A stretch of DNA of 64,000 nt from Geosiphon pyriformis uo1 (lineage: Eukaryota; Fungi; Glomeromycota): contig JAAOMT010000239.1 of assembly GCA_016748015.1 (NCBI GenBank), positions 96,356 through 160,355 on the forward strand, given 5' to 3'. Made by a program: the position numbers and the translations under genes. Under the pieces are notes generated by a model. The model worked only from the letters and a program-made list of their open reading frames with translations, made no database searches and was not told the origin of the DNA. Below, piece after piece: positions 5,785 through 63,537 of this stretch (positions are counted from its first letter, which is position 1; each line of letters begins with the position of its first letter).

Positions 5785-7593
5785 ATGAAGAAAAAATACC
5801 AAGCTAGATACAATTGGTAATTTTCGTTTATACATGTAATAGCTCTACCTTTACAAAACGAGATTCTTAAAAGTGAAAATTAATGGCTTGAAGGGATTGC
5901 CTGAAGCACCAGGCCGGATTCCTATTCTTGGTAATTTTCCGATATTTTTCAATTTAAAAATATTAACAAACCCTATAATATTTGAAAAATTAATTTCAAA
6001 TTCTTTTATTATTATAGGACATGTCTTTTTAATAAGTCGTACTATGTATAAAAAGTAATTATATTTTAATAATCTTTAAGTTATTGTGAATCACTTATTT
6101 TACTAAAATACAATTATTTAATATAGATTCGCTAAGTTGGGTGATATATTTACAATTTATATCGGCCCTCAGCGTTTTATAATTCTAAACAGTCCCAAAA
6201 TTATTAATGATCTTATTGAAAAGCGTAACTATAAATTTTATTGATTTTCTGAGATTGACCTAGAAATCTAATAAAACAAAATCTGACTATTAANNNNNNN
6301 NNNNNNNNNNNNNNNNNNNNNNNNNNNNNNNNNNNNNNNNNNNNNNNNNNNNNNNNNNNNNNNNNNNNNNNNNNNNNNNNNNNNNNNNNNNNNNNNNNNN
6401 NNNNNNNNNNNNNNNNNNNNNNNNNNNNNNNNNNNNNNNNNNNNNNNNNNNNNNNNATTTACGCTTCACCTCATTCAATATGATAATAAACATCTTGTTT
6501 GCGATCCAATTGGAAGATTTTAATGATCAAATTTATCAAAAATTAGAGAACGGTTACGCAAGAATTCTCGAAGCTCTTGGCTTTAAAAATCTTCTACCAA
6601 ATCTATTCCCAATATTCTTGTCCTTTCCTCCATATCGAAAGGAGCTTTCAAATATTATAGAAATACGTGACGAATTAGAAACACTAATTCGAGGCCTATT
6701 GAAAAGAGTAGAGGATGATTTGGAAAAGAAACCATGTGTTTCCCAAGATTTTTTGCAGAAATTGAATGAAGGCACTATTGACGAGTTAAGCGTTATTGTA
6801 TTATGCAATGATTTTATGCTAGCAGGAACAGTGAGTCCACAAATCCTATTTGAAGTCGAATAAATTCAAAATCCTTTTGTCAATTCTAGGAAACTATATA
6901 TTGGCTTATTGCAATTTTAGCCAATCATCCTGAGTTTCAGCAGAAAGCGCACGACGAATTAGACAGAGTAGTTGGATGTGAACATTTACCAAACATATCT
7001 GATTTTAACTCACTTCCATATATCCAATCACTGATTAAAGAAACTCTTCGTTGGATTCCTCTAGTTCCGAAACTTGGTTATATTCCACTGCGTTTTTTTT
7101 TCCGAAAATATATCACTTATATATTTATAATTTTTCTATTATATTTATTATTATAGTCCAGCACCTTTAAGGTTTCTTGAACAAGATGATGAATATTTAG
7201 GATATTATTTCCCGTAGTTTTCAATCCGGATCGGTTTTTTGAATTAAAAGAAAGCATGGCCGCTTCCCTACCAAAATCCAGATCATTATTCTTTTTCGAT
7301 TGGGAGACGAATTTGTACTGGAATTCACTTAGTAAGTTTTTAACAATTCTTTTATAAATTCATTTTATTCTCCCCTAGATTCTGAAAATAAAATTTATAT
7401 TTAATAGGCTGAAGTAAAAATACTCTCCATCTTAAGTGGGCTACTTTGGACCTTTAAAATCGAAAACGTGAAACGGGATGCAACTGGAAGGGTTCTTCCA
7501 ATTGATCTAAACGATTCGATTAAAAGTGTTCTTTAGACTCCTAATCCATACAATGTTCGATTCGTTCCAAGGCATCAAGAAATAAATCTTTAA
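5785..7593 (+). pseudogene. Cytochrome P450 pseudogene (multi-exon)
   Basis: Pro-rich hinge LPEAPGRIPILG, I-helix DFMLAGT, ExxR (KETLR), PERF-like FNPDRF and heme motif FSIGRRICTG. Disabled by a frameshifted start region, a deletion/frameshift after GYYFP (~7213), a frameshift before the heme motif and an in-frame TAG at 7534. Spans a gap. Confidence 0.85.
6294..6456. other. Assembly gap (N run)
   Basis: Run of N. Confidence 1.
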
Positions 7594-10441: not shown

Positions 10442-11548
10442 ATGTCACTAATCATAAATCGGCCACTGCCAAGATATCAAATTAGGATTCAAAACTCTGT
10501 ACGATCCTTCGCTTCGATTGTCTCAAACCTACCTATAGCATATGTCAGAAAATCAAAAAAATCAAATAAAGGTTTAGTAGATGCTTTTTTCGCCAAAGGG
10601 GAAAAACTCGGTCAAATTGATGTCGAAACTAAGCTAAGCAGTAAGAAATCAAAGTTGAAACTGAAGTCAGAAGCTGGGATAGGTAGTTTCACTTGTTTTA
10701 TCATACTCAATATGTAAATCATATTAAAATTTATGCTTTGTACATCATTCGATGTGAAGTGTTTCAACAAGAAGACATACAAGGATTCATAATTGGCTGT
10801 CAATTGATAAGGTTGCTGAGGGAAAAAGGCCAAAGTGAAAAGTTGATGAACTATCAAGTCGGTACAAAGTATTGGAGTAAGCGTGAGGATAATTTATTGC
10901 TGAAAGGTGTTTTAAAATTTGGAGCCGGTAACTGGGCTCTGATCTCAAAGGTTATTAAAACAAGAAGCAACAAACAAGCTTATTTTCGATGGCGATTACT
11001 TTCGAAAAGAGAAAATGTGGCTTGGGAAAAGAATAAAAAATCTTTTACCAATATGGTTGAAAAAAAAGATTCAAAATGGTGTAAAATTTTCCAGAATCAA
11101 AAACGGAATACTTATTTGAATACACTAGAGCCTACAAAGAATGGTAAAAATAAGAATTCTTGGAATAAAATGGAAAGACAAAATGTTGAAAAACCGGTAC
11201 GTTCCCCTGGACCAGATTCAGAAAATATTTATAACATCCTCAAGCTCAGTTCGCTAAAAAAGGGCTCTGAATTTTTTCGAGAACAGGCTTACAAATGTAA
11301 GTAACTTCAAATAAAAATTTCCACTTTTCAAGTTCAGATTCGCTTTGAAAATTTTCAAAAATTATCACTATTACGCAGATTATTCAAGTATGAATCTCAA
11401 TAAAGGAAGGTGGAATGATAAAGAAATCGCAAAATTCCAATTTTCTTTTAAAAAACTTGGTAAGAACTGGTATGAAGTTTCAAAAGCTGTCGGTTCAAGA
11501 ACACCTCGACAATGTTATGAATATTTTAGATTACATTTTAAGAATTGA
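10442..11548 (+). CDS. Myb/SANT-repeat DNA-binding protein (~315 aa; exons 10442-10682, 10760-11296, 11379-11548)
   Basis: Two clear Myb repeats (WSKREDNLLLKGVLKFGAGNWALISKVIKTRSNKQAYFRW; KGRWNDKEIAKF..KLGKNWYEVSKAVGSRTPRQCYEYF) plus a degenerate region between them. Two phase-1 GT-AG introns (77 and 82 nt) join the three ORFs in frame. Confidence 0.8.
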
Positions 11549-13515: not shown

Positions 13516-14559
13516 TTAACTTAATGCTCCCAATAATTCAGCTAAACTTGTCTTCGCCTGTAACCTTTTATTCTTTAAAGCACGATGATACCACAACAAA
13601 GCTTCATGCAAATTTCGCTGAACTCCAATCCCTTGTTCAAAACAAGTTGCGTATCCTTGTTGTCCTTCTGAATTTCCACTAACAGCTGATATGCGAAACC
13701 AATGGAATGCCCGCTTTTTATCCATTTTTCCATCCACTCCGCCATCAGAAAACGTCTTCGCTAATCTTACCTGAGCATTAGTATTTCCATTCTCGGCCGA
13801 CTTTAAATACCATTCCCTGGCAGTATCCATCTGCCGCTCATCTTCATGAAAAAATCCTAAAGCCAATTGACCAACAGCACTCCCACCTCCAGCAGACCTT
13901 AGGGCCCAATACCATGCTGATCTGTAACATTTTTGCGTGCCTGTACCAGTCGCATAGCAGTACGCCAGATTATTCTGTCCTGCGGCTGAACCAGCGTCTG
14001 CTGATCTTTGAGACCATTCAAATCCCAGTTCAGAACTTTTTTCCGTCCCAATTCCATCCAAGTAGCAAAGTGCAAGTAGAGCTTGTGCTGTAGGATCTTG
14101 ATGCGTTTCTGAACAACCTTTATAAAGGTTATAAGCCGCTATTTCATCCACGGCCGTACCAATTCCACGTTCATAAAAACATCCGAGAATGATTTGGAAT
14201 ATGACGTCATGATCTTGATTGGCTATTAGGAAGTTAAGAATGGTGCTATGTGTATAGGTTGGATATTGTTTCTTGAGAAACGTGTTAAGCGAAGGTATAA
14301 ACATATCTTTTTCGCCACGGTCTACAGATTTAAAAAAGAATTGTTTTAGGTCTTGGCCGAATTTTGAGATGGTTGAATTCATTGTTGTCGTTGGATCATT
14401 ATCAAGACAATTATTTAAAGAAACATCTAAGCTGCTGATAGAATTATTATTGTTATTATTTTCACTATTTTCATTGTTGATCATCGAATTCATAGTTTCG
14501 AAAATATCTGTGATTTCCTCTGGTGAATTTGTGATATTATAATTGATTAGTCCGGGCAT
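13516..14559 (-). CDS. Sel1-like repeat (HCP-like) protein, 347 aa, intronless
   Basis: About six SLR repeats (LGCFYERGIG, AQALLALCYLDGIGT, GQNNLAYCYATGTGT, WYLKSAENGNTNAQVRLA). The ATG of MPGLINYN at 14559 is the likely start. N-terminus is Asn-rich. Confidence 0.92.
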   Translation of the reverse strand: MPGLINYNITNSPEEITDIFETMNSMINNENSENNNNNNSISSLDVSLNNCLDNDPTTTMNSTISKFGQDLKQFFFKSVDRGEKDMFIPSLNTFLKKQYPTYTHSTILNFLIANQDHDVIFQIILGCFYERGIGTAVDEIAAYNLYKGCSETHQDPTAQALLALCYLDGIGTEKSSELGFEWSQRSADAGSAAGQNNLAYCYATGTGTQKCYRSAWYWALRSAGGGSAVGQLALGFFHEDERQMDTAREWYLKSAENGNTNAQVRLAKTFSDGGVDGKMDKKRAFHWFRISAVSGNSEGQQGYATCFEQGIGVQRNLHEALLWYHRALKNKRLQAKTSLAELLGALS

Positions 14560-14973
14560 TATATTCCTCAATTTTTCAAAGCTGTGTATATAAGTATGGA
14601 TTACTCGGAAAAGAATACAGTATTTTGAAATCATTCAATGCTGTTCGACTTTTTACTTGATTTGCCGTTTCACAATGTTAGTTATGCGCCACATTTCTGC
14701 AATAAGTACAGATGATCGATCAAAAATACACTGTTATTGGAGATTTGGGTCTTGATAAAGTTAGACTGAGATATGTGGCTTTAGGAATTGATGTTGATGT
14801 TGATATTGATTTTTATGAGTTTCATTAAAGCGGCTCATAATATCAGTGAATATTCAGATCAAATTTTTATATATATGGTAAAGAAATTATTTGTCAATAT
14901 TTTATGCCTATATTTTCTGGAAATTTTAATTATTAATAAGATATATACATATAAATGTATATATCTTACTTTG

Positions 14974-19466: not shown

Positions 19467-20720
19467 ATGCAAGATCAATACCACAACATTCCAAAATTCC
19501 TTCTTCGTAATTTTGCTATTAATAATTATGAGAGAATATTTGTGAGCAGTGTAAAGCTATCTAAACAGAAAAAACATAAACGGAACTTTGAAAATAGGAA
19601 TAAGGAAGAAGCACTACTTCAAGTTTACAATAGAGCTATAGGTCAATTGGACGTTTCGTTGGCCGCGAAAACCTATGGATACCAAGACATGTACAAAAAT
19701 CTTAATCATGAAAACGCGATGCACTTAGAAGAAAAACTGGCAAAACTTGAAGAAAAATGTTCAACAGTGGTCAGAGATATTATAAAAGCATCTCAAGTGA
19801 AAAGTCAGGTCGTTTTGCTCAGGAGAGACCTTGAGAATCTACGCAAGTTCCTCTTTATCATGAGCTATCGAAACCGTTCTCGATGGTCCCAATATGCCAA
19901 TGAAGATTTTGATTTATTCACTTGGTCGATGGTAATTGACTTTATGCGACAGAATAATTTAAAAAAGGCTCAAGAAGTGTGGTTACAGAATATCCAAGAA
20001 ATACTAGAGACCCCGCATGAAGAGATCAAAGACAACTTGCGAATTTTTTTGATAGATAGGGCAGAGTACGACACACGCATGGTTCAATGTTTTCTCGTAA
20101 TTTGGCAAGCTGGTGAAAATGACGAGTTTATACTAACCAACAACGGATTTGGAATCTTCGAAGGAACGAACAATTCCCTTGGGATTTTTGGTCCATCTCA
20201 ATTTGCCTATCATTGGTTTTACGTCATCTCTCCAAAGCTAGTGTTGGTTCTCTGTCATCCTTTATTCCGAATAGATAATGGACTCGACATTATTGAAAAA
20301 GAGCTCGAATTGAGACGTTCGATATTTGAACATGTTTCTCATAAACCAGCGACTCCGAAATATGCAGCAATTGCAAAACATGTGCCAATTCATAAATTTG
20401 CCAGACGGGAGGATGACACATTTACTTTTCCCTTTGTCAAAGTCGATTCGGCCACCGTTCATCTTGTAAACTCTGTCGTGCTTAATGAGGCTGAACCAGA
20501 CCTAGTTCTGGCTTTCCTTTCCCGTTCGTGGCTCTATAAGACAGTTGTTAAATACCATAAAAACAAGAAAATTGGTCTACAACACGACTTCTCAAGTTTG
20601 AAAAGGAGGTTGTTCATGGTGTTAAACAAAACTCACGAGGAAAACTTGAATCTCCGGAGAAACATCCCGGTTGGCGGCATATGTAATTGGAATGTGTACG
20701 TGATGAGTTCGGAACCCTGA
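19467..20720 (+). CDS. DUF4238-domain protein, 417 aa, intronless
   Basis: N-terminal QYHNIPKFLLRNF (family motif qHyiPxflLrxF), LEEKLAKLE helix, LRKFLFIMSYRN, EFILTNNG and FYVISPKLVLVL motifs. TATA-like TTATATAAA ~40 nt upstream. Confidence 0.8.
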   Translation: MQDQYHNIPKFLLRNFAINNYERIFVSSVKLSKQKKHKRNFENRNKEEALLQVYNRAIGQLDVSLAAKTYGYQDMYKNLNHENAMHLEEKLAKLEEKCSTVVRDIIKASQVKSQVVLLRRDLENLRKFLFIMSYRNRSRWSQYANEDFDLFTWSMVIDFMRQNNLKKAQEVWLQNIQEILETPHEEIKDNLRIFLIDRAEYDTRMVQCFLVIWQAGENDEFILTNNGFGIFEGTNNSLGIFGPSQFAYHWFYVISPKLVLVLCHPLFRIDNGLDIIEKELELRRSIFEHVSHKPATPKYAAIAKHVPIHKFARREDDTFTFPFVKVDSATVHLVNSVVLNEAEPDLVLAFLSRSWLYKTVVKYHKNKKIGLQHDFSSLKRRLFMVLNKTHEENLNLRRNIPVGGICNWNVYVMSSEP

Positions 20721-25500: not shown

Positions 25501-27200
25501 AAAAATACTTAAAAAATAAAAATATATATGCTGCATACTTATTTTAATTTTTAAATGTTTTTTTAATATTAATAATATTTAATATAATTATAAACTTTTA
25601 AACAAGTGAATAAAATACAAAAATAAAAATTTGCTTTTATTAATAATATATTTAAAAAATTTTTTCTAAAAACCAAGTTTGTTTTTAATCTAAAACTTTA
25701 TATTTAATCTTTAAAAATATTGTTATTTATTAAATTATTATTAGTTATAAATTTTAGTAAATAAATTTTAACTATAAACAAATTTATGTATATAATAATT
25801 TTTGTTAAGCCAAAAATAAATTAACTAAAGATTATGCAAATTACTCAAATATTAAAAAATATATTATTACTTATGTAACTTATGTAATATAAAAAATAAT
25901 TAAATCATATTATTTATGTTTTGTTTTTATAATATCTAAAAATTAGATTTTTATTTTAAACTTAATTTTATTGAATTTTTTTTAAATTTAAAAAATATTT
26001 TATTCTTTAAAAATTTAATATTAACAAAAAAACCAAATATCAATTAAGTAAACTTTTTTTTAAAAATTTAATTTTTTGAATTAATTAAATAGAAAATTAT
26101 TATTTTTATAATTAAAATTAATATATTTTAATATTAAATAATATTTTTCAACCAATTAATTTTTTATACTTGGAAATAATAAGTATTTTAAGTAGAATTA
26201 TTAAAAACAATTTAATTTATCAAGTTTTATTTTATAAATATTATTTTTTTTGAATGTTTTAATATTATCTTTTTATTTTTTGTTAAGACAATAATTTTTT
26301 AATAAGATTTCAAATTTAATTGTAAGCTTAAAAAATTTTATGTTTTTAAATATTATTTTTTGACAGTTTTTAATTAAATTTAAATTTTGTTGATTTATTA
26401 ATTAGTTAAAAAAATTTTTGCCAATTTTATTAAATAATAATATTTTTTTCTTAAATTTAAATATATAAATAAAGATTCATTTTTTCATATAAAATAATTT
26501 TGGTAATTTAAGCAATATTTATGGTTTTATATATATAAGAATTTTTTAAATAAATAAATTGAATATTATTTTTTTGAAATTAATATACACGAGTGGCTAA
26601 TCATGCGTTGGTGGTTGGATTACACTGGATATGCAATAAAAAAAATATATAACTTTATTATATTAAAAATTATTAAAACTTTAATTGATAAATATTAACT
26701 TTTAAATCTTATTATAAAATAATATTATATAAAACTTAATTATATATTTTTAATTAACATTTTGAAAATCAAAGTTAAGTAAATATTCATTAACAAAATA
26801 AGTTAATTCATAATTTAAATATTATTATTAAATTTTAAAAATAAACAACTTCTTATGTTATTAAATTTGAACTGAATTTTAAAAAATATTGTTTATTTTG
26901 TAAGTGTTATTTATTTTAAAACTTGACAGTAATTTTTAAAAAGGGCTGCTTATTTAATTTTTATAACTTTTGGACTTAAAAAAGAAAGATTGCTTTATAA
27001 CTTTAATTAAAAGTTAAATATGTGGTTATTTGGATTATGCTGAAAAAACCAAATAGTTAATTTATGTAATGAGACTATTAAGATAAAAAATGGCTAACAA
27101 TATGACTATATTCAAAATTATAAATAATATTTGCATATTTGAAAAATATTGTCTAATTTAATTAATGAAATATAAATTTGTTTTTGTAAAGTAGTCTAGA
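22550..27200. other. Extremely AT-rich gene desert, probably fully decayed repeats
   Basis: No ORF of 60 aa or more in the track; very low GC by eye. Origin cannot be assigned. Confidence 0.5.
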
Positions 27201-27610: not shown

Positions 27611-30600
27611 ATGTCAACAACGACCAGTAACGACCCTTTTGCGTTTTTTGAAGACGACCTGTCAACCCTGCTAAACACTCGAACCACCCGCGGCATGGCA
27701 AAACGCGAGAAACTTAGACGAAATGCCGGTTCACCGCCTCAGAACAGAGCCTTAACAAATAATTCGTCCTTTGAAACGCCGCCTAATACTCGAGCTGAAG
27801 TTGAGTCAAAAGAAGTCAAGGTCACGATTGTGACACCTTCTTTCTCAAAGCCTTCGTCTGTAATATCCGAAGAGGCCTCTTCTTTATCAGTTACTACACC
27901 ACCACATAACTTTTCACCCTCGCCGTCACGTTTTACTCGGTCAAAAAGAAAAGTCAGAGAGATATCTGAAACACCTGAGACTGTTACAAAAAGTGCACCA
28001 AGAAAGAGAAAGCCTAACGATATAGATAATCATATGGGTACACCTTCGCGTAATACACGCTCAAAGGCTAGAGCAAAAGACCAAAATATAATTTCGGAAG
28101 ATGCTGAGTTATTTGCCGAAAAACCCAAAAAAACGGCTGTTACCACGGAAAAAACCAAGAGCCAATCAATGGCAAGAAAGTTTAAGGTACAAAACAAAAG
28201 ATTGGTTCAATACACGAATGTAAGCAAAAGTATTTTGGGAACTATTGATGGACAAACTTCAGAGTCGGATGATGTGATAATGAATGAGGAGAATCAATAT
28301 GGTGAATTAAGAGATTTCACCAAAGACCAGGCTAATCAATCTAACGAAATTGGCTCAAAAACTAATCAAGAAATTGATGATGAGAGAATGGATACGATAA
28401 ATTTTGATAAATCATTTTTATCAGAGGAATCTGAAGGGCAGCCTCAAGCCCAAGATGCTCAAGTCAAGGAAGATGATAGCGATGATTTCGAAGAAGTTGA
28501 GATATTTGAAACTCAAAAAGAGGGTATGTTAAAATTCTTTTCAGGAATGACGACGCTTTTAATTATAATAATATTTTGCGATTTACAGAAATTTTTGAAC
28601 CTCAAGATTATTATGGAGACTATACTCTCCCTGAGAAATTGGCTGATGAAACCATTGAAATTACGGTCTCGACAAAAGCAATCAAGTAAGTTCAAGATAT
28701 TTTTTTATTAAATCCCTGTTACAATCAAAAACAACATTAAATTTCAAAATAATAGATCACGAGGTGTAACTAAAATGGACAGACTGATACGGACTGAGAC
28801 ACACAAGATTCATGTATTATCCCTAATTGGACATGGTTTAATTCGGAATAAATGGTGTAACGATCGCCTTGCCCAGGTAATCATTATATGAAATCCACTG
28901 ATATTTGAAATTTCCTGACATCTGTTTGCCTTAAAAGATTCTAATATCCAGAGACTGTTTTCATATCAGTGTCTCGCTCTTTCTTTGATTCCTCCAGATC
29001 TCTTTTCTCAATTTGACACAAAATTTTGTGAAAAAGAGAAATTGACAATTGAAGAATGGACGAATATATTGCAACCTCTGTGCCTTTGGTGGAAAGGATT
29101 TTTCAATATTTGTCGTCCTGGAATTCTTTCACGAGAATATAATGAATTTGGAGTTCTGGGGGTTGTCACTGTATGTTCTTATGCATTTAAAATGTAATTT
29201 TAGAATTTCGAAGTTGCACTCATCATCGCCATTTCTGACGAGTTTTATAGGATGAAGAAAAGAGCTATGTAGATTGGATTCCTTCTATTCAAGCTTTTCG
29301 AATGTGCTTCAAGGAAGGCCGTGGAAGCAAAGACACTAGTGCTCAGTTATTTGTCACTTTATTAAGAGCTTTAGGAATACCTGCTCGCTTGATAATTTCA
29401 TTGCAGGCCGTCCCTTTCAAGTTTTCAGCTAAAAAGCCAGTCGCAAACAAGAAATCGGCAGTAAGAAAGACTGTCAAAACTGAGAAAAAGCAAAAAACCA
29501 AAGCCAGTGACGAAATAACCGGAGATAACATGGAAACTAAAACCTACGTAGTCACAACCGCCAAAAGAGGTCGCAGAACCAGCCCAACTCGAGCACGAAA
29601 AAAATCAAATACAGAGGAAAGTGATCTGAATTGTGTCATAGAACCAGAAAGAGTTAGCAAGTATTTTACAAAGCCCCAGGAAAAAAACGCTGATGAAACA
29701 CTCAGCAAGTATTTTGCAGCGTCACCAAAAGCATATGATGATACTGTAGCAACCAATTCCGCTAATTCAAACAGCTCAAATCAGAAAGGCAAGGCACCTC
29801 AGGATAGAGAAACGGATAGCGATGATGTTTTCCAACCACCATTAAGAAGATTTTCACTTCGGTCTCGAACGAGAAATCAATCACCCAAAGCCATAAAAAT
29901 GAAGATTGAAATAAGTGACGACGAAGATGAAAGTGAAAATGAAAGCGATCAACACAGTGATTTTGAACCCTCTTCCAAGTTTCCATTAAGTCCAAAGCCC
30001 CTCAGACAAACAAGTAGCATTAAACGAGAAAAGCAAGAGGATGAGGAATATGAATTGTCAGTATCTCATCAGAATAAATTTCCCACGCAACATAAAAGGT
30101 CTGGATCTAAAGTAAAACTCAAGGTAGCCAAAGGTATTTATTTGTCCGATTTTTGAATTTGAAAATTCCTTAATATAACCTGATTTTTCTTCTCAGCTGA
30201 TTTTGAAGTCGAACCTCCACCTGTATACTGGTGCGAGGTATATTCGGGAGGGGATAAAAAATGGTTTTGCATAGACCCAATTAGAGCGATTTTGAATAAT
30301 CCACAAACAATGGAGCCAGCATCTTCAGCAACAGACAATATAATAGCTTATGTTGTGGCTTTTGAAGAAGGTACTTAATAAAGATACATCAGCTTAATTT
30401 CTTTTACCTCGCTTATGACTGATTAGCTCATTTATCCCTAGATTTGTACATTAAGGATGTTACACGTCGCTATGCTTCGAGATGGGGTGCTCACACGCGT
30501 AAATTACGAATCCCTGCTACCAAAGACGGGATCGATTGGTGGAAAGAGACATTAAATGTTAAAATGCGACCCTACGAGACTGTAAGTTCTCGATATCCAT

Positions 30601-32181
30601 TATTTAGATTATTTATAATGATGAATTATAATATATCGCACTTTTTTTTTACAGGAACAAGACAAACTGGAAGATACAGAGTTGTTGTCTTCTGAAACAA
30701 TGGAGGCGATTCCAACAACTATTGGCCCATTTAATAATCATCCTTTGTGTGAATTATTTTTTCTTATATTTTGTCAAGAAAAAAATATGACTTTTCCAAC
30801 GAGTAATTTTTTGATTTAGGTATGCTCTTGAACGTCACATTAAAAAATTTGAAATATTACATCCGAAAGAGCCTATTCTTGGATATATCCGTAATGAGCC
30901 AATCTTTCCCCGGGAATGTGTAAAGCCGGTAACGTATGATCATTGAGATTTCATTAATTTTTACATGGCCATTATTTGTGTTTTATCCAGCTGTTTGTAT
31001 ACAGTTGCATACTGTGGAAACCTGGCTGAAAGAAGGTCGTCAAATTAAGGTAAGAATATGGCTTAATATATAATTGAAATTCATTTGAATGCCTTTAAGA
31101 TTTCAATACAAGATTAAAAACTTGGTAGGAAGGTGAACAACCAATGAAACATGTAAAATCCCGTGCGGTCACCTTAACGAAGAAAAAACTGGCAAAAATG
31201 GCAGAATTGTATGATGAACCCCCACGTGAATCAGGACTTTACGCTGAATGGCAAACCGAGCCTTATCAACCTAAACCTGTAGTCAATGTGTGTACTATCA
31301 TAGTATTATTGTAATCTTTTTTATAGTTACTTTGAATGTTTGAAATTCTTGATTTGTCCTATTAAAATAGGGGAAGATACCCAAGAATACTTACGGAAAT
31401 GTCGATCTCTTCAAACCGAACATGTGTCCGATTGGAGCAGTACACATCCCCAGTAAGTATTCAATGATTATTAGCTATCCTGTTATATAATTTTTTATTT
31501 AAGTACATCTACAATCATATAATTTTACTTTTGAATAGTTCATGGAATATCCAAGATTGCAAAGCAACTTGATATTGACTTTGCCGAAGCTGTGGTGAGC
31601 TTTAAAGAGAGAAAAAATTTCTTCATATCCCAAGATCTCATCTAACGTGAAAATTGGCCCTTTTTATAAGATTGGCTTCGAATTTCACTGTAACCGATGT
31701 ATTCCAACAGTAGGTGGAATTGTCGTGGCACAAGAACATGAAGAAATGGTCCGAGATGTATGTACTACAAATATGTTGTCTTTTTCATTCGAAAACCATT
31801 TCCTCTTTTTTATATAATGTCTCATCTTTGGATTTGAATTGTGTTAATTTTCAGGCATGGCGTGAATACTCGGAGAATGTGGCCGTTGAAAAAGAAAAGA
31901 AACGTGTAAAAGTGGTTTTAGGTCGATGGCGCAAACTTTTCATTAAAATGAGGATCAAGTTACGAGTCCAAGAACAGTTTGCTGAAGAGATTATGGAGCC
32001 TATGGAGAGTGAGGAAAGCGAGTTTGATCATGATGGCGATGATTCCTTTTCTGATGATATGGCGATTAATAATAGTGAGAAAGAAAAGACAAACGTGACA
32101 TTATTTAAAGAAAATGGGGAGTCATCCAAATTTGCGGGTGGATTTTTGAGAGAAGTTGATGAGGATGGTGTTGAGTGTTGA
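27611..32181 (+). CDS. RAD4: DNA damage recognition protein Rad4/XPC (multi-intron)
   Basis: Spliced motifs: THKIHVLSLIGHGLIRNKWCND, GSKDTSAQLFVTLLRALGIPARLIISLQ, PPVYWCEVY..WFCIDP, KDVTRRYASRW, FNNHPLYALERHIKKFEILHP (BHD1), LHTVETWLKEGRQIK (BHD2), GKIPKNTYGNVDLF..GFEFH..IPTVGGIVV (BHD3). More than 10 short GT-AG introns. Confidence 0.95.
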
Positions 32182-32372
32182 AGCAGGTCGGTAGGTGATC
32201 TGCAACCTAATTTTTTAACGAGGTTCCTGTAGGGATTGCGCATCTTGATATGAATTTTGATAAATCTTCTGAAATAATAAAGATGTAATTAAAGAATACT
32301 ATGCACGCAATTTAATTTCATTATTCTTCAAAAATAATGCCATTTTTTAATTGTCATTACATCTTTGTTTCT

Positions 32373-32425
32373 CTGCAAACTTATTTTCCGCTTTTATAAA
32401 TTAAAAGCGGAAAAGAATTTTGCAG
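32373..32425. promoter_or_regulatory. Inverted repeat/hairpin upstream of the SBP56 gene
   Basis: Perfect 13-bp arms TTTTCCGCTTTTA (32384-32396) and TAAAAGCGGAAAA (32402-32414) with a 5-nt loop; extends to 24 bp with 2 mismatches (CTGCAAA/TTTGCAG). The structure is seen directly; function is inferred. Confidence 0.6.
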
Positions 32426-32528
32426 TGTAATAATTCTGATGTCAAAATTCAGAACTGGTCGCACAAGATTGAGATATTTAAAAAAAAAACTATGTTTGTA
32501 GTGATTGCTATTTTGCTGCTGTAATACT

Positions 32529-33899
32529 ATGACTCATACTGGCTGTGGTCGTGGGTGTGGTCCTGGCCCTGGCTATGCATCTCCAGAAGCAGCCATAAAG
32601 GCAGAACCAGAAAAGGTGCTTTATGTAGTCGCCCTTTATACAGGCACTGGTATTGAAGAACCAGATTATTTCGCCACCGTAGACGTTGACCCCGATTCTC
32701 CAAACTACTCCCATGTGATTCATCGTCTGCCTATGCCCTACATTGGCGATGAGTTACATCACTTTGGATGGAATTCTTGTAGTTCTTGTCATGGCGACCC
32801 CAGTAAATCCCGACGCTTTGCTGTGATTCCTGGACAACGTTCTAGTCGTATTTATATTGTTGATACAGTAGATAAAAAAGCACCAAAACTGCACAAAGTT
32901 ATTGAACCAGAAGAAATTCGAGAAAAGACCCACTTAACTGCCCCTCACACAGTACACTGCCTACCAGATGGTCATGTAATGATTTCCATGCTGGGTGATA
33001 GCGAGGGAAATGGTCCTGGTGGTTTTTTGTTATTGGATAAAAATTTTGACATTGCTGGACGTTGGGAACGCCAAACCGACGGCATGAGATTTAATTATGA
33101 CTTTTGGTATCAGCCGCGTCATAACGTCATGGTGAGTAGTGAGTGGGCCGCACCCAAAACTTATTATCCTGGTTTTGATCTCAATGACGTAGAAGCTGAC
33201 AAGTACGGTCACCATATACATTTCTGGGATTGGTCAACACGGGAGATTATCCAAAGTTTTGACTTGGGGAAAGAAGGGTTAATTCCCTTAGAATTGCGCT
33301 TTCACCATAATCCCAATAGTGATCATGGGTTTGTCGCTGCTGCACTCAGCAGTACCATCTGGCATTGGTACAAGCGTAATGATGGTTGGGAAATAGAGAA
33401 AGTAATTGAAATAGCACCGGTTGAAGTAGAAGGCAGGCCTATCCCTGTGTCAGCTCTAATTACTGATATTTTGATTTCAATATCTGATCGCTATATTTAC
33501 CTCTCAAACTGGCTACATGGAGATATTCGCCAATATGATATCAGCAATCCCGCGCATCCCAAACTCACTGGTCAAGTTTGGTGTGGTGGTTTGCTAGGTA
33601 AAGGCGGGGAAGTTCAAGGTCATAAATTAGCTGGTGGACCACAAATGCTTCAGCTGAGTTTGGACGGTAAACGGCTTTATGTAACGAATTCCTTGTTAAG
33701 CAGTTGGGATAATCAATTTTACCCCGACTTGTCCAAGACTGGGTCATATATGTTGCAGATTGACTGTGATACTGAGAATGGGGGACTAACAATCAACGAA
33801 AATTTCTACATTGACTTTGGTGAAGAACCAGCCGGGCCCGCTCGCGCACATGAGATGCATTACCCTGGCGGTGACTCCACCTCTGATATTTGGGTGTAA
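32529..33899 (+). CDS. SELENBP1: Selenium-binding protein SBP56 / methanethiol oxidase family, 456 aa, intronless, cyanobacterial-like
   Basis: Family motifs [85 protein letters not shown] and terminal [11 protein letters not shown]. First in-frame ATG is at 32529. Confidence 0.97.
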
Positions 33900-36030
33900 C
33901 AGTATTTGATTTGCAGCAGTTTATTCAAGTCATCTCTTAAATTTGAATAATTTGGATTTAGTTTCTCGGTCAATTATTCCAAACCTTATTTTATTTTATA
34001 AAAGAATTCGAATTATATTTTTTGAATGATAAAGTTTGGAAATAAAATAGAAACTTGAAATTCTTTTGACAATTTATTACGAGTATTAAAAAATGGTAAA
34101 CTGTAGGAGAGATTATTAAATAAACATTAATATTTTGTTTAAATAAATTTTGAAATTTACATGCGACTAACTTTTACAATAAATAAATATATTGTAGTCA
34201 ATATAATTTTAGAATATGATAAAAACAATCTAAAAAGTTGTAATTTTGCTTTATAAAAATGGAAACCTGTAAAAATGTATTTTTAAGAATGAATATGATT
34301 TTAGAAAATTTCTAAACATAAAAATTTGAAATCAATTTTAGATAAAATTCGAAATTTTTATTAGAACAGAAGCACTTTTTAATTTTTGTTAATAAAAGCA
34401 AGTTAGAATAATGACCACAAATGACAATAGATACTAGATCACCTTTTTTTTCTTTTGATCAAATTAAAGCTGAGGGCAAAAAATAAAAAAAATTTGGATA
34501 TGAAAAATCAGTAAGCTAAGAGCGTTAAAAAATATTTCGATTAGTACTTTTTATTTAGAAATCTAAAACTAAATTCTTTCGACAAAATATAATTGTAAAA
34601 GCATGTAATTTCATTTTCGGTTTAACCACACTATGAAGTAAGAAAAAGAATTAATTTGAACATGAAATAAAAGAAGCATAATCAATAATATAGTTTTTTA
34701 TACAAAACAATATTCATTACCGAAGATAAATGTGAAATGGGTATTTTATTTTGTTTTTTCTGAATATTTACTTCTTTTGACCAAATACATATTTGGTCAT
34801 TTTTTTTCATAGTTTGCTAATTTACCTTTAAGTTAAGTTTTTTTAAAAAAAATGTTTAGATTTAATTTCTGCTGGTATAATCTATCAAAAACCTTTATTG
34901 TCTAGTGTTACATTTCTTTCAAATATAAGCCTCCAATATGTCACACTTTTTGAAATTTTGGCATAGTTCCTGTATTTGACTGTAAGATCTTTTTAAGACT
35001 ATATATTCAATCTGAAGATGCTTTTGAATCAGTGTTGTCAAGAAAATTTTTTTGTAATAATATGGTATTCTATTTAATATTTTTTTTGAAGATATTAAAA
35101 AAACAATCTAGTACCATCGAAATTATAGAATAATATTTATGCTTTATCTTAAATTTAATTATAAAGAGTATGTTAAAATTTCTTGAAAACGCTATTTGAT
35201 TTTTCTGCTTGAGCAAATCGAATATACTTTATAGGCATCCAAATATTTATATAGTCAAGTTTTAAGTAAGTAAAAACAATATAATCCCTTCATTTTTATC
35301 TTTGCAAAAATTAAATACAAAGCTTGGGTAATTCTTCTCGGGCTATCGATTAATTAGGTTCTTGTTCAAGAGCATTCAAGATGGCGATTTCGGGATCTTG
35401 AAAAGATAATCTAAGCAAAAGGGTTTGGATAAGAAAGGTTTTTAAGAAATTCGGAGCTGGAAAGTGGATCAATATTTCAAGAATTTATTGGAACAAAGAT
35501 TAATTATTAAGTTTTTGGTGAAAGCCTTTTTTTGGCTTGGTAAGAATTTGATGAAAGATTTCAAAGACACTTTATTGATTTTTATCGGGTTTACAAAATT
35601 GAAGAATTAAACAATTATTTGCACTTTTTAGCAGTACTTTCAAAAAATTACTTAAATGAAGTTCTTTTCAAGCAGAATTTAATTGAGATTTCCAAAAAGA
35701 TAAGGTCAAGAATATCTCAAAAATGTTACTTTTATAATTGTATTAATTTTCAATTCAAAGAATCTTTAGTAAGCTTTGGTGAAGTCTTGAACGAAATTAA
35801 AAAAGTTTTGAGGCGAGATATATATTTGGCTTTATCAATTCATTTTCAATTGAAACAACACTTAATTAATTTTTTATTAATAAAGTGATGATTTTCGCTA
35901 AATATATAAATAATTCTAATTCTAATCTAATTATGATTGATTTATGATTGGTTTATAATTAAAAAGAAACAAAGTATAATTAGATAATTTAGATAATAAA
36001 TAGTAAAATTAACGATTACACATTGAAAAT

Positions 36031-37742
36031 TCATTCAAAATTTTCTTCAACTTTTTTACTCTCAGGCAAATAGACTAATTATTTAAAAAGAAAGTTAAAA
36101 TATGTAATTAAAGCAAATAAAATGAATCATTTTATAAATTAAATAAACAAACCTGTTGAAAAATTGACCATTTGAGCAGTTAAAAGACGACTTGTATAAA
36201 CTGCTTCTGGATGAATTGCTATCTTTGTTGTTGTCGAGTCATTTTTTGCTATTTTTGTTAGTATATTTGATTTCCCAAAGTATATCAATCTAAATATATG
36301 ATTATTATACAAATCAAGAAGTTCCATAAACTTTCCTGTAAGTTCTCTAGCAGTAGGACGATTCTTAGGATTAGCATCCCAACACTTTTTAATGAGTTTA
36401 CCGATAGAAGGTGGAATAAGTGGGGAGGTAATATTAGGTCTTTGACCATTTAAAATAGCCATTATAAGGATTTCGTCATGAGGACAATCATGAAAAGGNN
36501 NNNNNNNNNNNNNNNNNNNNNNNNNNNNNNNNNNNNNNNNNNNNNNNNNNNNNNNNNNNNNNNNNNNNNNNNNNNNNNNNNNNNNNNNNNNNNNNNNNNN
36601 NNNNNNNNNNNNNNNNNNNNNNNNNNNNNNNNNNNNNNNNNNNNNNNNNNNNNNNNNNNNNNNNNNNNNNNNNNNNNNNNNNNNNNNNNNNNNNNNNNNN
36701 NNNNNNNNNNNNNNNNNNNNNNNNNNNNNNNNNNNNNNNNNNNNNNNNNNNNNNNNNNNNNNNNNNNNNNNNNNNNNNNNNNNNNNNNNNNNNNNNNNNN
36801 NNNNNNNNNNNNNNNNNNNNNNNNNNNNNNNNNNNNNNNNNNNNNNNNNNNNNNNNNNNNNNNNNNNNNNNNNNNNNNNNNNNNNNNNNNNNNNNNNNNN
36901 NNNNNNNNNNNNNNNNNNNNNNNNNNNNNNNNNNNNNNNNNNNNNNNNNNNNNNNNNNNNNNNNNNNNNNNNNNNNNNNNNNNNNNNNNNNNNNNNNNNN
37001 NNNNNNNNNNNNNNNNNNNNNNNNNNNNNNNNNNNNNNNNNNNNNNNNNNNNNNNNNNNNNNNNNNNNNNNNNNNNNNNNNNNNNNNNNNNNNNNNNNNN
37101 NNNNNNNNNNNNNNNNNNNNNNNNNNNNNNNNNNNNNNNNNNNNNNNNNNNTATCCCTTATAACTAAACATAGCTCTTTGAATATATAACTATCAAAACA
37201 CAGTGTAAAAAAAGATTAAGTAAATAGATAATATATATAGTAAATAACTAATAAGTAAATGTGAATTAAATTAATATATATAAATATAAATAGTTTGTTA
37301 CCTCTTTAAACACTTCTGAACTGTTCGTTGGGATAATTTTTATTGCTACCGCCCATCCTATTCTTTTTCTTTTATATTCCATTGAACCATGATGTTTTAT
37401 ACTTTCTACATCAATTAATCCATCAATTAAGGTTGCTTTATAAATTATACCAAACCCTCCTCTAGCAATTTCGTTGATATCCGACAAACGCTCCCATGGA
37501 ATCCATTCATAGTAATTCAATTGACTATTCCAATTATCAGGAATATAGATTGGATTCTTAATTATTTTATCAACTTCTTCATTGCCACTTGAAAAGTCTT
37601 TATAATGTTTTTCAAAAAACATGAACTGGCATTCAATACAATCATTAGACGAATTATATTTAATACTCTTTTGACACCGTTGACATTCATTGCAATCATG
37701 AGCCTCTGGACGAGTCGTTCTTTTAATTTCTTTGTTTTCCAT
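36031..37742 (-). CDS. Tyrosine-kinase-like protein kinase (Glomeromycota-expanded type); middle lies in a gap
   Basis: Start MENKEIKR (37742), Cys-rich N-terminus, EWIPWERLSDINEIARGGFGIIYKA, AVAIK, intron after EVFKE. C-lobe GQRPNITSPLIPP..KCWDANPKNRPTA and AVYTSRLL; last mini-exon LVYLPESKKVEENFE*. Intactness cannot be verified. Confidence 0.8.
36499..37151. other. Assembly gap (N run)
   Basis: Run of N. Confidence 1.
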
Positions 37743-38920: not shown

Positions 38921-39868
38921 CTATTTAAATAATTTGATTTAATTAATATTATTTTTTTGAAAATTTTATAAAATTTATAAATCATATATATATATTGTTG
39001 TTTTTATGATATTTTAGCTTATAAAAAATTAAAAATTTAAATATTAACGTTATTTTAATTCAAATTTATAATATCATTTTAATATAAAATAGTATTAAGA
39101 ATATAATAAAATCAATTTATTAAAATAGTCGTATAATGATTAAAAGACTTTAAGTAACTAATTTTACATTGAGTCTTAAATATAAAGATGATAAGCAAAC
39201 AAAAATTGATAAATTAATGTAATTTTATTATTCTTAAGTAATAAATATACATTTATTATTAAACTTCAATCTAAGAGAAAATAAATTTGAATTTAACATA
39301 TTAAAAAGTAATTTTTATTATTACAACAGTTTAAGTTACTCTGTTATTTAGAATTCTTTATTTACGTTAACTTAATTAATATGAAATTCCAAGTTTACTT
39401 ATTAATAAAATAGTTAATAAAATAATTAAAAAAATCTAATTTATAATAATTTATAACTATTGTAAAACAATTATTAATTATTAAGAATTAGCTAATAAAA
39501 AAGTTTGTAAAAAATAATTGCATTTTTTATGTGATCTTATTATATAATATACATATATGTAAATTAAATATAATAAATAAAAAATTAGTTTTGTTATTTC
39601 TATTTAAGAATATTAATTAGTAAAAATTCAAAAAAAATTCAAGTAAAAAATAATTATTAATTTTATTGTTAAAAACCAACAATGAAATTTAGTAAAAATA
39701 TTATTATATTATTTAATAATATATATTATTTTAAATAATTTTATTAAAACTTTAAACCAATTTAATTTAAATATATAAAACATTATTTTTCAACTATAAA
39801 ACTTAATAAAATAAAAATGTTTTAAAGATTTATATAATATAAAAAAACTCTTTCTCTTTTCTTATTTT

Positions 39869-42010
39869 ATGACCATAACCAGAGCAAAGAGTAAAAAAGT
39901 TTTAAACATTATTTTCTCTATAGTAACTCATAAAGTTTCAACAAAAAAGAGTTTTTCTATCATCAAAGCAGCTAAGCAGAATGATTTGGTAATGTTTTTT
40001 TAAATATTAGTAATGAAAAGCTATTTTTGGTGGCTTTTAAAGCATTTTTTTCATCTTTAATTGGTGGTTCTTTTCCAGTCAAAGTTTTTTCTAAGAAATA
40101 CATTCGAATCAGTTTTAGTATTGTTTTTACTCTTTCTAAAAGCCCTAAGTTTTTCAACAATAGACTAGTTAACAAGCTGGTTTTTTTCGTTTTTACTATC
40201 AACTCCATCATTATCTTTTTACAAATAGCCAAAAAGGCCAAGAAATCAAAAAAACAGCAGCAATTACTTGCATTTGCTATTATTATACTGAATTTTTTTA
40301 TGATTCTAGATAAAATCTTAAATAAAATTTCTTTAACAACAACCAGCCCTTTTTCTAATACAAATAACAATAACAATAGCATGTTTCTTAAAATAAAACA
40401 AGATCAATCACTAGTTGTATTGTCAAATATAGTGTTTTTTAGTAGATTATTACTAGTTTTAAAAGCAAAACAACTTATTGAGTTACTTGATTTCAAGAAT
40501 TGGGCTGATCAAATAGAAACTAAATTAATTTTTCTTTTTTTGTTTTCTGATGCTATTTTTAATAATATCTAAAAAATAATTTCCAATTATCAAAAGTTTT
40601 TTGGATGAATAATTTCTATTTTGGTGTTTAATGCTATCTTTAAAATCAAGTAAATTTTAGTTAATTTTTTGTTTTATTTGTTGTCTGGTTTTTGGGCTTA
40701 AGTTGGTTTTCAAAAACAACATTAAGTTGTTTTGTGTAAATTTTGCTTTTAAGACTTCTTTAATTACTGCCATTAAAGTTTTTATTAGTGGTTTTCTTTT
40801 TTTGACTACATTTAAAATTGTAAAATTTTCTGTAATGACTTTTGGTTCTTTTTTTCTTAATTTTGTTGTACTCTATAATGTTTTTCTTGGTATATTTTCT
40901 GATAATATTAAAAATACTTTTGGTATTGTTATTTTTATTAAATTAAAATCTGTTAATTTGTAGCAATATGCTGTTGTTAATTTCAAGGACTTTTTTTTTG
41001 CTGTTACTGCTGTTCTTAGTAATTAGTCTGTTTTGGTAAAAAAAACTATATTCAGATTTTTTTTTCTTAATTAAAAAGAAATTATTATTTTAAAAGATTT
41101 TTTTAAAGCCAAATTAATTAATTTTTTTTTGGCTGTACTGTTTTTGAAATCGGTAATATAATTTCTTAAGTTGGTAGTCATTCATGTTTCATTCTTTATT
41201 TTCTAGATTTTTATTATTGTTAATGCTTTGTTATTATCACTTTTAAATTTAGAAAAAGTTTAGAACTTGTTATAATAAAAACTAGTACTTGGTACAGATA
41301 TTATATTTGATGAAAAACTTTTGAAAGTTATTATTACTATAGGTATTAAAGTCTAAATTATTTGTTTGTTGACTATAAGATGTTTTTTTTTCTTTTTTTT
41401 AAGTTGTCTTTTAAATTAGTTGTTAATTTTTAACTTTTCATATTTTTTATTATTATTGACAAGTTTTATGCTATGGCTTTTGTTTTTTTGGCTTTTTTGG
41501 CTACTGTTTTTTTGGTTGTTTCTGCTGCTAATCCTGTTATTAAGTTTAGATTAAATTTTTTGAAGACTTAAATTTTGAGCTTGGCTGTTTTAGTGAAATT
41601 TTTTGTTAAGCTTATTGGTTTTTTGGTTATTTTAATTATTAGTTTTCTAAATAATAATGCTGTCAAAACTTTACAGATTAAAAAAAAATTGCTTTTTATA
41701 AAGTATGTTGTTAACAATTTATTCAATCTTTTAATTTGTGTTTTTAAAAATATTGTTGGTCTTAGATTTGAAGTTGATTTTAATAATATAGATTATAATA
41801 GAATGCTGACTGCTAAATCTTTTTTTTTGAGTAAGAACACTATTGAATATGTTATAATATTATAATATATGTTAAGTACTAATATAAAAAGTATTGAATC
41901 TATTAGATTGTTTCTTAGTAAGTTTATTTTTGATTTTAAAAACTTAAATAGTATTATTAAAATAATTAGTAGGCTGAATTTACTTTTTATTTTTTTTGTT
42001 TTAACATAGT
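39869..42010 (+). mobile_element. Heavily mutated ORF1-like retroelement relic
   Basis: Begins MTITRAKSKK; fragments SKSPKFFNNRLVNKLVF, AKKAKKSKKQQQ and WADQIE resemble a high-copy Glomeromycota retroelement ORF1 as recalled. Strongly T-enriched with many stops. Confidence 0.6.
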
Positions 42011-44035: not shown

Positions 44036-45006
44036 TTAAATATTCAAAGAACCATGTTTAATAATAACGATAGCAATTTCCTATACAATGTATCTAAAAT
44101 ATATGGAATTTCCCAAAACACTAAAACATTTGAATATAGAATTGTGATACAACTTGCTCGATATGGAGACATGCGGAAGCATTTATCAAAAAATTTTCAT
44201 TATATGAGTTGGGAAGATAAATTATTGATCGCGTCTGATATAGCTTCTGGACTTTCTTCAATTCATTCTTCTGGTATGATTCATCGTGACCTACTTTCGG
44301 GCAATATCCTACAATATTATTCACGATCGGTACAAATTGGAGACCTCGGATTATGTCAATCTACAAACAATGGAGAAAAAACAGCAGGGGTGGAGAAAAA
44401 GATATTTGGAGTGATTCCATATATTCCACCAGAAGTTTTAAGAGGAGAAAAGTTTACGACAGCTGGGGATATTTATAGTTTTGCCATAATATTATGTGAA
44501 TTGGCAACAGAAAAACCTCCCTTTCATGTTTATCCTTATGACGAAATCTTTATAATGGCTATTTTAAATGGTCAAAGACTTAATATTACCTCCCCCCTTA
44601 TTCCACCTTCTATAGGTAAACTGATTGAAAAATGTTGGAATGCTAATTCTAAGAATCATCCTACTGCTAAAGAAGTTTGGAAGAAGTCGGGAAAACTTGA
44701 AAATTTGTACAATAATATATTTAAAAGATGGATATACTTTAGGACAATAAAATTTTCAAAAGGCATTCAACCCCTTAAAAAGACTATGAAACACGATAAG
44801 AAATTAATTCATACAGGAGCAGTTTATAAAAGTCATCCTTAACTGCTCAAATGGTTAATTTTTCTAAAGATTAGTTCATTTAATTTCAAAATGACTGATT
44901 AGGTTATTAGTTAAATTGAATATGCTAAACTTTGCTTTTTATTTTGCTTTTTAAAAGAATTAATCTATTTGACTGAAAGTAATGAAGTTGAATAAATTTT
45001 CGAATG
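44036..45006 (+). pseudogene. TKL kinase lacking its N-lobe exon (probable pseudogene)
   Basis: HRDLLSGN, IGDLGL, GVIPYIPPE and GDIYSFAIIL present. No GxGxxG/VAIK exon upstream of the acceptor at 44035; frameshift at AVYKSH; eroded consensus (QRLNI, WNANS, HPTA). Confidence 0.8.
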
Positions 45007-61144: not shown

Positions 61145-63537
61145 ATGGATTCAGGAATTGAGCAATGTTCAAAATCCCATTTTTTTGCGACTCTGAAAAC
61201 TTCGACAACTATAACCTCATTTAAATCAGATAAATGTTCTAAAATTCCTAACCAAGAACCTGAATTGATAAATGCTATTAACCACGATCCAGAAGACAAA
61301 TTCAAAAAACCTTTTCAAAATCCTGACGCTTCAGTTAAAAATCTTATTAGATCGGATTTCGAAAAATGCAGTGAGAAGAAAATTAAAGGAAATGAGTCAG
61401 ATGATGAACTTACATTAGTGATTGGTCAAAATGCAAATGAGGATGATCCAATGTCATGGGCACCAGCCAAAAAAAGGTCAATCTTATTCACGATTGCGCT
61501 CGCTGGATTGATCGCACCAGTTTCAACCACGTGAGTTTACTTGATGTTGAGAAACTTTAAACTTATAGAACCTAATTTCTCATTTTTGACATTTTTATAG
61601 GATTTTTTACCCTGCCATAGATTTCATACGTGATGAATTTAAAACAACTCAAATTTTGGCAAACTCAATGAGTAAGCTGAATTTTTGCAATGTTTTTTTT
61701 ATTATCCTTGTCCAGTCATTCACTATTTTTTATTATACAAAACTTTAAACTCTGATTTACTATAAAAAGTTGCCTCATTTATATTTTTATGTGGAATAGC
61801 GGTAAGTCGATACAGTATTATCGAGACTCATTCAATTATATCAATTACCCTCAAGTTTATACTCACTTCCTCGCCATAATGAAGCTTTCTCTCTTCCATT
61901 AATAAAGCCACTAGGATGGGCCACATTTTCAGACACATTCGGTACACGAAGAAAAATTTATCTGATATCTTTCTCGATTTTTATCTTGGTTTCAATTGTT
62001 TGTGCTCTTTCAAAAAATGTTTGGCTTTTACTTTCGATGCGAGCTCTTCAAGCATGTGGCGCTTCTGCGGTACATAGCATCGGAGCTGGGACTATTAGCG
62101 ATATTTATCCTAAATCAGGTAAATGAAATGCAAACAAATTTTTCAAAATTTTATTGAGAGAAATTTCTCATCAAATTCTTTTTTTATTTTTATTCATCAT
62201 AATAAATTGCAGAGCGTGGGAAGTCCTTCGGGTTATTTTATATCGGACCATTGATTGGTAGGTATTTTATTCATTTTAAAGTGGTCAAGTTTTTGTAAAC
62301 TCTAAAAATCTTTTCGATATTTGATCTTTCACAGGTCCCGTTCTCGGACCTATAATAGGGTACATGATAGTAACTCATGTTTGATTATTATGATTATGAG
62401 GACCTCAAATTAATAATTCCTCAAACTTTTAATTTAGTGGCCAATTAAGTCACCATCTGGGATGGAGGTAAGTTACACACACTTATTAATAGTAATTTTT
62501 TCACGATCAACAAAGAAATCATATATTGCATTGTTTTTCAGATCAATTTTTTGGTTTTTAACAATCATCGGGACTCTTATTGTCATAATCATCTATTTCT
62601 TTCTCCCGGAAACATTTTATCGTCCATCTAACACCTTTGACGATTCTCTCCAATCCAAATTAACGAAAACAAAAATCAACGCTCATGAACCTCGAATAAA
62701 ATTTAATCCTCTAAAACCATTATATCTTTTTCGCTATCCATTTGTCTCGATAATTGTTATTTATATAGGTTTAATATTCGGAACTCTATATTCACAAAAC
62801 GTTCTCATTTCAACTAAATTTGCTCGACAATACAAACTCTCCACAGACCAAAAAGGATGGGTAATGCTTCCAAATGGTATTGGATACATGATTGGTTCGG
62901 TATTTGGTGGTCGATATTCTGATTATATGCTTAAAAAAGCTGGAGCAGATAGTTGGCCAGAATTAAGGATTAAAAGTTCTTGGATTGGTGCTACAATTTT
63001 TCCAATTGGGATGATATCTTTTGGGTGGTTTGTTGAGAAGAATGCCCCTCTTGCTGTTCCTTTGGTCTGCATGTTTATTTGTAAGTTTAAATAAAGGGTG
63101 TCAAATTAAAAATTTAGGGTTTCAAAACTTGAAAATATAATTCCCACTCCATAAATTTATAATCCCATACTATTTCAAATTTCAAATTTCAAACCTCAAA
63201 TATTTTAGCAAGCCTAGGCACAATGCTTATCTTCTCGTCAACTTGCAGCTACCTGGTTGACGCATTTCCATCCCACAGTGCCTCAGCAATTGCGGCAAAC
63301 AACTTTACACGATATATGAGTGCGGCCATTATGACAATTTTGGCCGAGTCGATCGAAAGAAACCTTGGTCCGGGCATAAGTTTCTCATTATTATCTAGTT
63401 TTACGATTGTTAGTGGGTTGTTTTTAATTTTAGTGTATATTAATGGGCGTAAATGGAGGGAACAAATAACTAAAATTGTAATAATTGAGATAGACGAGAA
63501 AGAGAAAAATGATAGCAAGCGGGATCAGACAATTTGA
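61145..63537 (+). CDS. MFS transporter, DHA1 drug:H+ antiporter type (9 exons)
   Basis: DDPMSWAPAKK, motif A WATFSDTFGTRR, MRALQACGAS, GAGTISDIYPKSERG, motif C GPLIGPVLGPIIGG..LGWRSIFW, FFLPET, GGRYSD, YLVDAFP..ASAIAANNF. Eight GT-AG introns. Confidence 0.93.

Follow-up and report, generated by a model that had tools for sequence, protein, structure and literature searches.

A transcribed SBP56 gene of Nostocaceae origin next to Rad4 in the genome of the fungus Geosiphon pyriformis

A gene of the SBP56 family was very probably transferred horizontally from the cyanobacterial family Nostocaceae to the Geosiphon lineage, in the nuclear genome of which it is transcribed, is kept under constraint and, judged by homology, would encode a copper-dependent thiol oxidase. 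The gene lies in a stretch of 64,000 nucleotides of Geosiphon pyriformis (contig JAAOMT010000239.1, positions 96,356 to 160,355), which is called the window here and to which all coordinates refer. In the proposed course of events, the coding sequence alone would have survived the transfer into the nucleus, placed between Rad4/XPC and AT-rich DNA; the transferred gene would yield an unspliced RNA that extends past its stop codon into fungal DNA, and purifying selection would have retained it. A first-pass annotation, made from the sequence alone, had mentioned a selenium-binding protein among the candidates for horizontal gene transfer (HGT) in the Geosiphon genome report. This was confirmed second-hand by a 2026 review, which names such a candidate with reference to the Geosiphon genome paper of 2021 (Malar et al.), so that the transfer was already known (PMC13315312). 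New here are the assignment of the donor to the Nostocaceae and the finding that the gene is no copy of any sequenced Nostoc, its transcription from the fungal locus, the purifying selection that persists together with a faster protein rate, and a natural Cys-to-Ser replacement at a residue that was found to matter in two mutagenesis experiments of 2026. The presence of a gene from the symbiont's family in the nucleus of the host bears on the genetic entanglement of such partnerships. The locus comprises the following features:

27611..32181, + strand: Rad4/XPC gene, the intron-rich upstream neighbour; 5′ limit approximate, defined by joints in RNA contigs and by Pfam
30820-30927, 31004-31047, 31127-31287, 31371-31452, 31539-31593, 31670-31757 and 31855-32181, + strand: the last seven exons of Rad4
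32182..32528, + strand: spacer between Rad4 and SBP56, 347 bp, GC 0.30; holds the Rad4 3′ UTR (contig support to 32298)
32529..33899, + strand: coding sequence of SBP56, methanethiol oxidase type, 456 codons plus stop, intronless; defined by the open frame, Pfam and identity to Nostocaceae
32547..32564, + strand: N-terminal tandem-duplication insert of about 18 nt (6 codons), its placement within the repeat being ambiguous
33876..33878, + strand: Ser codon 450, at the position of the conserved C-terminal Cys, from comparison with Nostocaceae and 94 orthologues
32527..34049, + strand: stretch under unspliced RNA-derived contigs, comprising the whole ORF and 150 nt of AT-rich DNA 3′ of it

The SBP56 frame extends on the forward strand from an ATG at 32529 to a TAA at 33899 without any internal stop codon, and the program-made open reading frame starts further 5′, at a TTG at 32505. 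Contigs derived from RNA follow the genome without a break over 32527-34049, so that the gene is without intron; the intact, intronless ORF of 456 codons described earlier is thus borne out by the open frame together with these contigs. The translation matches the Pfam profile SBP56 (PF05694) with a score of 706 bits (cut-off 34), covering profile positions 3-453 of 453. All motifs that the first-pass annotation had quoted (the His-rich motifs, CSSC, SSEW and SSWD) were located in the translation, namely HH at residues 77-78, CSSC at 84-87, HTVHC at 140-144, SSEW at 203 and SSWD at 391, but its statement that the conserved features are all retained went too far, as the C-terminal Cys is replaced by Ser450. 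The ORF is, as had been noted, richer in GC than its surroundings (0.446 compared to 0.30 upstream and 0.20 downstream), and this contrast mostly reflects coding versus non-coding DNA because the Rad4 exons themselves reach 0.40-0.41. SBP56 is present as a single copy in the assembly of 128.3 Mb (792 contigs) and it is carried on a contig of 764 kb.

The origin of the gene was analyzed by homologue ranking and by maximum-likelihood (ML) phylogeny. Among 7889 homologues, the 120 best are bacterial without exception, with identities of at least 74% and with Nostoc on top at 84%. In a ranking over 185,579 species genomes the identity tracks taxonomy, with 82-86% for Nostoc, 78-81% for other Nostocales and 72-76% for other cyanobacteria, followed by Chloroflexota, Armatimonadota and others; the Nostocaceae proteins as a whole show 84-87% identity to the fungal copy, the best of them 86-87%. 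A careful ML tree of 56 rows, calculated under LG+C20+F+G4, places the fungal SBP56 inside the Nostocaceae clade with a support of 100/99, its position within this clade being a basal polytomy. A DNA tree agrees with the placement in the Nostocaceae and leaves the exact sister open, and a quick tree of 105 rows, to which sea urchin, nematode, archaeal, Bradyrhizobium-type (proteobacterial) and Nitrospira-type SBP56 sequences were added, recovers the fungal protein in the same Nostocaceae clade (SH-aLRT 96). The cyanobacterial (Nostocales) rather than animal type that had been proposed for the protein is therefore supported by the ranking and by the trees. The gene is of Nostocaceae origin. Descent from an ancestral eukaryotic or fungal gene might be considered as animals and plants widely carry SBP56; however, the animal proteins that were retrieved are just 34-45% identical to the fungal copy and remote in the tree, and the fungal gene is nested within a single cyanobacterial family. 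Furthermore, a survey reported that SBP homologues are absent in 762 fungal proteomes, other Glomeromycotina included, and that fungal SBP is known solely from a few Ascomycota, where it is of acidobacterial type (PMC10277263). Inheritance from a eukaryotic ancestor has a vanishingly small probability, and vertical descent is excluded.

The SBP56 proteins of Nostocaceae, such as those of Nostoc calcicola FACHB-3891, Nostoc sp. ChiSLP01 and Nostoc sp. T09, are annotated as selenium-binding family protein or methanethiol oxidase. They share with the fungal copy the start (MTH...), the stop, all family motifs and the lack of a signal peptide. In contrast to them, the fungal gene is located in AT-rich eukaryotic DNA next to the spliced Rad4, its CC motif is split by an N-terminal insert of 6 residues, it has Ser for the C-terminal Cys, and its end branch is longer (0.18 compared to 0.003-0.09 in Nostocaceae). 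The acidobacterial-type SBP of Ascomycota was likewise gained by fungi from bacteria; it represents a separate event with another donor phylum and another recipient phylum, and its CSSC and HxD motifs are modified whereas they are intact in the Geosiphon copy (PMC10277263). Besides the fungal gene, two further placements in the trees were observed. SBP56 of Armatimonadota (two Chthonomonadaceae sequences) adjoins the cyanobacterial clade with a support of 97-99, and the SBP56 of a metagenome-assembled genome labelled 'Planktothrix' falls outside the cyanobacterial clade; the 105-row tree joins it to Obscuribacterales (support 100), the 56-row tree, weakly, to Chloroflexota. These placements suggest that SBP56 was passed between bacterial phyla or that sequences were wrongly binned.

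The upstream neighbour of SBP56 was assigned to Rad4/XPC by Pfam searches of its exons one at a time, which yielded Transglut_core, Rad4, BHD_1, BHD_2 and BHD_3 on successive exons, and six of its GT..AG introns are removed in RNA-derived contigs. Its stop codon ends at 32181, leaving 347 bp without any N up to the ATG of SBP56, in agreement with the gap-free distance of about 350 bp from an intron-rich Rad4 that had been reported before. The nearest assembly gap is located downstream, at 36499-37151, 2.6 kb past the SBP56 stop codon. The promoter of SBP56 is presumably located in this 347-bp spacer. The spacer furthermore contains, at 32340-32458 and in a part without coverage by RNA contigs, an imperfect inverted repeat with arms of 57 nt that are 72% complementary and 5 nt apart, which could be part of the Rad4 terminator region, a promoter element or the relic of a small transposon. 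A search for flanking repeats and target-site duplications around SBP56 returned, apart from this one imperfect inverted repeat, just AT-rich matches at chance level. The similarity to Nostoc DNA starts just past the small N-terminal insert and does not extend beyond the stop codon; comparison of 6 kb on each side to 30 cyanobacterial loci by blastn and tblastx revealed no cyanobacterial remnants.

As Nostoc is necessarily present in the material and as the ORF is intronless with a cyanobacterial-like composition, an assembly chimera or contamination, i.e., a cyanobacterial ORF from the sample wrongly joined to fungal DNA, has to be weighed. In run X1, another assembler produced a contig of 12,667 nt that covers 30800-35391 without a single difference, extends 8 kb further upstream and joins Rad4, SBP56 and the AT-rich downstream DNA across both junctions at one depth (86.5). 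This run may stem from the assembly's own sample, so that it is not independent and is a check on the assembler, not on the biology. In two studies, RNA contigs pass from the ORF into a 3′ flank with 20% GC that is unlike cyanobacterial flanks, and the first 601 nt past the stop codon occur only once in the assembly. Moreover, the flanks have no similarity to Nostoc, and the DNA identity of the fungal SBP56 to Nostoc coding sequences is only 77-85%, with synonymous distances of 0.66-0.86 to the sampled Nostocaceae copies, from which it follows that the gene is no copy of any sequenced Nostoc. An identity of about 100% to the co-sequenced Nostoc, which would have indicated a chimera, is thus not seen against sequenced Nostoc, where it amounts to at most about 85%. 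A chimeric origin of the locus is very unlikely. SBP56 is physically linked to native fungal genes and is no assembly artefact, with the reservation made above for the bridging DNA run, and the embedding in a fungal chromosome that had been proposed is upheld by the re-assembled contig over both junctions and by the transcripts that enter the fungal flank.

The transcripts were found in two runs. Run X2 is from the same sample as X1 and run X3 is from a different sample and study; as the Rad4 introns are removed in the contigs of X2 and X3, both runs are RNA-derived. The X2 contig spans 32527-34049 and the X3 contig 32566-33976, neither differing from the genome, and they reach 150 nt (X2) and 77 nt (X3) into the fungal 3′ flank. 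SBP56 is transcribed from the fungal locus as an unspliced RNA, on the strand, ends, polyadenylation and level of which the contigs are silent. The X2 contigs end at 32298 on the 3′ side of Rad4 and start at 32527, each fused to Illumina adapter sequence, and neither position was taken as a transcript end as both are adapter-tagged contig ends; if 32527 was the true 5′ end, 2 nt before the ATG, the SBP56 mRNA would be almost leaderless. A ranking of expression by contig depth (286 and 504 for SBP56, 12-78 for Rad4) was rejected as well, as contig depth cannot rank genes.

The dN/dS comparison to Nostoc orthologues that had been suggested gave pairwise values of 0.08-0.13 between the fungal SBP56 and Nostocaceae, i.e., purifying selection. 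With the tree held fixed, the end branch leading to the fungal copy has a length of 0.0895 at codon positions 1+2 and of 0.28 at position 3, and the ratio of the two is 0.32 on this branch compared to 0.16 tree-wide. In relative-rate tests, 37-45 unique amino-acid changes were counted in the fungal copy compared to 11-27 in the Nostoc copies; 17 of 18 tests were significant, and the protein evolved 2-4 times faster on the fungal branch than in Nostoc. The fungal SBP56 remains under purifying selection, at about half the stringency seen in Nostoc. Its raised protein rate is in line with a relaxation of constraint or with a change in function. The base composition was considered as a clock for the transfer and rejected for this use: the GC3 is 0.37 in the fungal SBP56, 0.35-0.39 in Nostoc orthologues and 0.33-0.35 in Rad4 exons, so that composition is alike in donor and host genes and uninformative on the time spent in the nucleus.

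Of the 147 columns that show a conservation of at least 97% among 94 bacterial orthologues, the fungal protein keeps 146, and it is altered at 19 of the 298 positions that are invariant in Nostocaceae. Two alterations concern cysteines. By the N-terminal insert, the bacterial sequence ACCGPGY, as encoded by four Nostoc coding sequences, is turned into a stretch given as 12 protein letters, and all 94 bacterial orthologues are gapped at residue 10; the N-terminal CC of bacterial SBP56 thereby becomes C6-x3-C10, and the CSSC at 84-87 is intact. CSSC and N-terminal CC or CxxC motifs have been linked to selenium binding. The second alteration is Ser450, at a position that is Cys in 25 of 25 Nostocaceae and in 80 of the 94 bacterial orthologues, five other bacterial orthologues having Ser. 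It corresponds to Cys466 of human SELENBP1 and to Cys448 of Roseobacter RdMTO, for both of which mutagenesis reported in 2026 showed that a Cys-to-Ser exchange causes a loss of up to 55% of activity, and the residue was termed important and non-essential (PMC13603461).

The gene is predicted to encode an SBP56-type enzyme with a seven-bladed propeller, namely a copper-dependent thiol (methanethiol) oxidase of the cytosol that would form formaldehyde, H2S and H2O2 from methanethiol, O2 and water. Experiments have demonstrated copper-dependent methanethiol oxidase activity for human SELENBP1, C. elegans SEMO-1 and Roseobacter RdMTO. They have in common with the fungal copy the Pfam family, CSSC and the positions on which copper binding and activity depend (HH, HxxHC, Asp and Glu), and they differ from it by the C-terminal Cys, which is replaced in the fungal protein. 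Six residues, the mutation of which abolishes the activity of human SELENBP1 and of SEMO-1 (PMC10362175), are matched by motif and spacing to His77, His78, His140, His143, Asp191 and Glu255, all present in the fungal SBP56. By the same approach, Gly227 and His330 match Gly225 and His329 of the human protein, the two known sites of halitosis mutations (PMC10362175). Residues 16-454 align with SBP56 of Sulfolobus tokodaii (PDB 2ECE) with an E-value of 4.6e-131, which would imply a seven-bladed β-propeller for the fungal protein. This archaeal protein is the only solved structure of the family that was found and, in contrast to the fungal copy, it has several loop insertions and an Ala at the position of the C-terminal Cys. 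From these correspondences we infer that the fungal SBP56 binds copper and oxidizes methanethiol.

It has been considered that the gene is integrated and expressed but encodes a protein that is no longer a methanethiol oxidase, i.e., one that took over another role, such as metal or selenium binding or redox sensing, or that is decaying. The replacement of the C-terminal Cys by Ser, the rebuilding of the selenium-linked N-terminal CC to C-x3-C, the 19 changed positions, the 2-4 fold increase in protein rate and the doubled ratio of positions 1+2 to position 3 point in this direction. However, the frame is intact with a dN/dS of about 0.1, the near-invariant columns are kept with a single exception together with all six residues essential in SELENBP1, Cys-to-Ser mutants of orthologues keep about half of their activity (PMC13603461), and other bacterial orthologues have Ser at the same position by nature. 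A loss of the oxidase activity is therefore unlikely, and a functional thiol oxidase is the preferred reading for the Geosiphon protein.

Less clear than the family of the donor is its relation to the resident symbiont, the source that the first-pass annotation had proposed. SBP56 is present in 18 of 127 Nostoc species genomes and missing from 109, none of the proteins exceeding 87% identity to the fungal copy, and by these comparisons the donor would be a Nostocaceae lineage that is unsampled or long diverged. No targeting sequence toward the symbiont compartment was added: apart from the internal Gly/Cys-rich insert of 6 residues, the N-terminus aligns with that of the bacterial proteins from the first residue on, and with the bacterial start codon still in use the fungal SBP56 has gained no leader. 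The sparse distribution of the gene in Nostoc, the basal polytomy inside the Nostocaceae clade, the synonymous distance to every sampled Nostoc and the unmodified N-terminal start would all be in line with a donor other than the resident Nostoc lineage, i.e., a free-living or unrelated Nostocaceae strain. On the other hand, Geosiphon is, to our knowledge, the only fungus with cyanobacteria (Nostoc) inside its cells, so that the lineage of the symbiont had far more opportunity for transfer. The SBP homologue is also absent from the proteomes of other Glomeromycotina (PMC10277263). An unrelated donor is thus a possibility to be taken seriously, although we do not consider it the probable one; if it applied, the gene would say little about the integration of host and symbiont. 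The more specific proposal, that SBP56 came from an ancestor of the resident Nostoc and now serves as a symbiosis enzyme, which would clear volatile thiols of the cyanobacterium or produce an H2S/H2O2 signal in the Nostoc-bearing bladders, is unlikely. It remains speculative that the fungal SBP56 acts on thiols of its Nostoc partner, as do the thiol detoxification and H2S/H2O2 signalling in the symbiosis that the first-pass annotation had suggested. If true, the proposal of a symbiosis enzyme would constitute the first functional step of a genetic integration of host and symbiont in the only known fungal endocyanosis.

Elsewhere in the window, ORFs encoding a Sel1-repeat protein (13516-14634, − strand), a TKL-type protein kinase (44054-44842, + strand), a Myb protein (10693-11304, + strand) and an MFS transporter (62462-63094, + strand) represent an ordinary Glomeromycotina gene neighbourhood. 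An intronless DUF4238 ORF of 417 aa is located at 19467-20720 (+ strand) on the same 764 kb contig as SBP56. The DUF4238 family is expanded in Glomeromycotina, including Funneliformis, Ambispora, Rhizophagus, Paraglomus, Gigaspora and others; the closest named relative of this ORF is a Geosiphon pyriformis paralogue with 68% identity, and remoter matches are found in Basidiomycota and Ascomycota. This ORF thereby supports the assignment of the SBP56-bearing contig to a Glomeromycotina chromosome. The window contains two runs of N (scaffold gaps), at 6294-6456 and at the above-mentioned 36499-37151, and a C-terminal fragment of a protein kinase (36139-36462, − strand) is found just before the latter. 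Finally, the segments 26000-27000 and 39000-40000 have a GC content of 0.09-0.15, compared to 0.20-0.30 in the local intergenic DNA.
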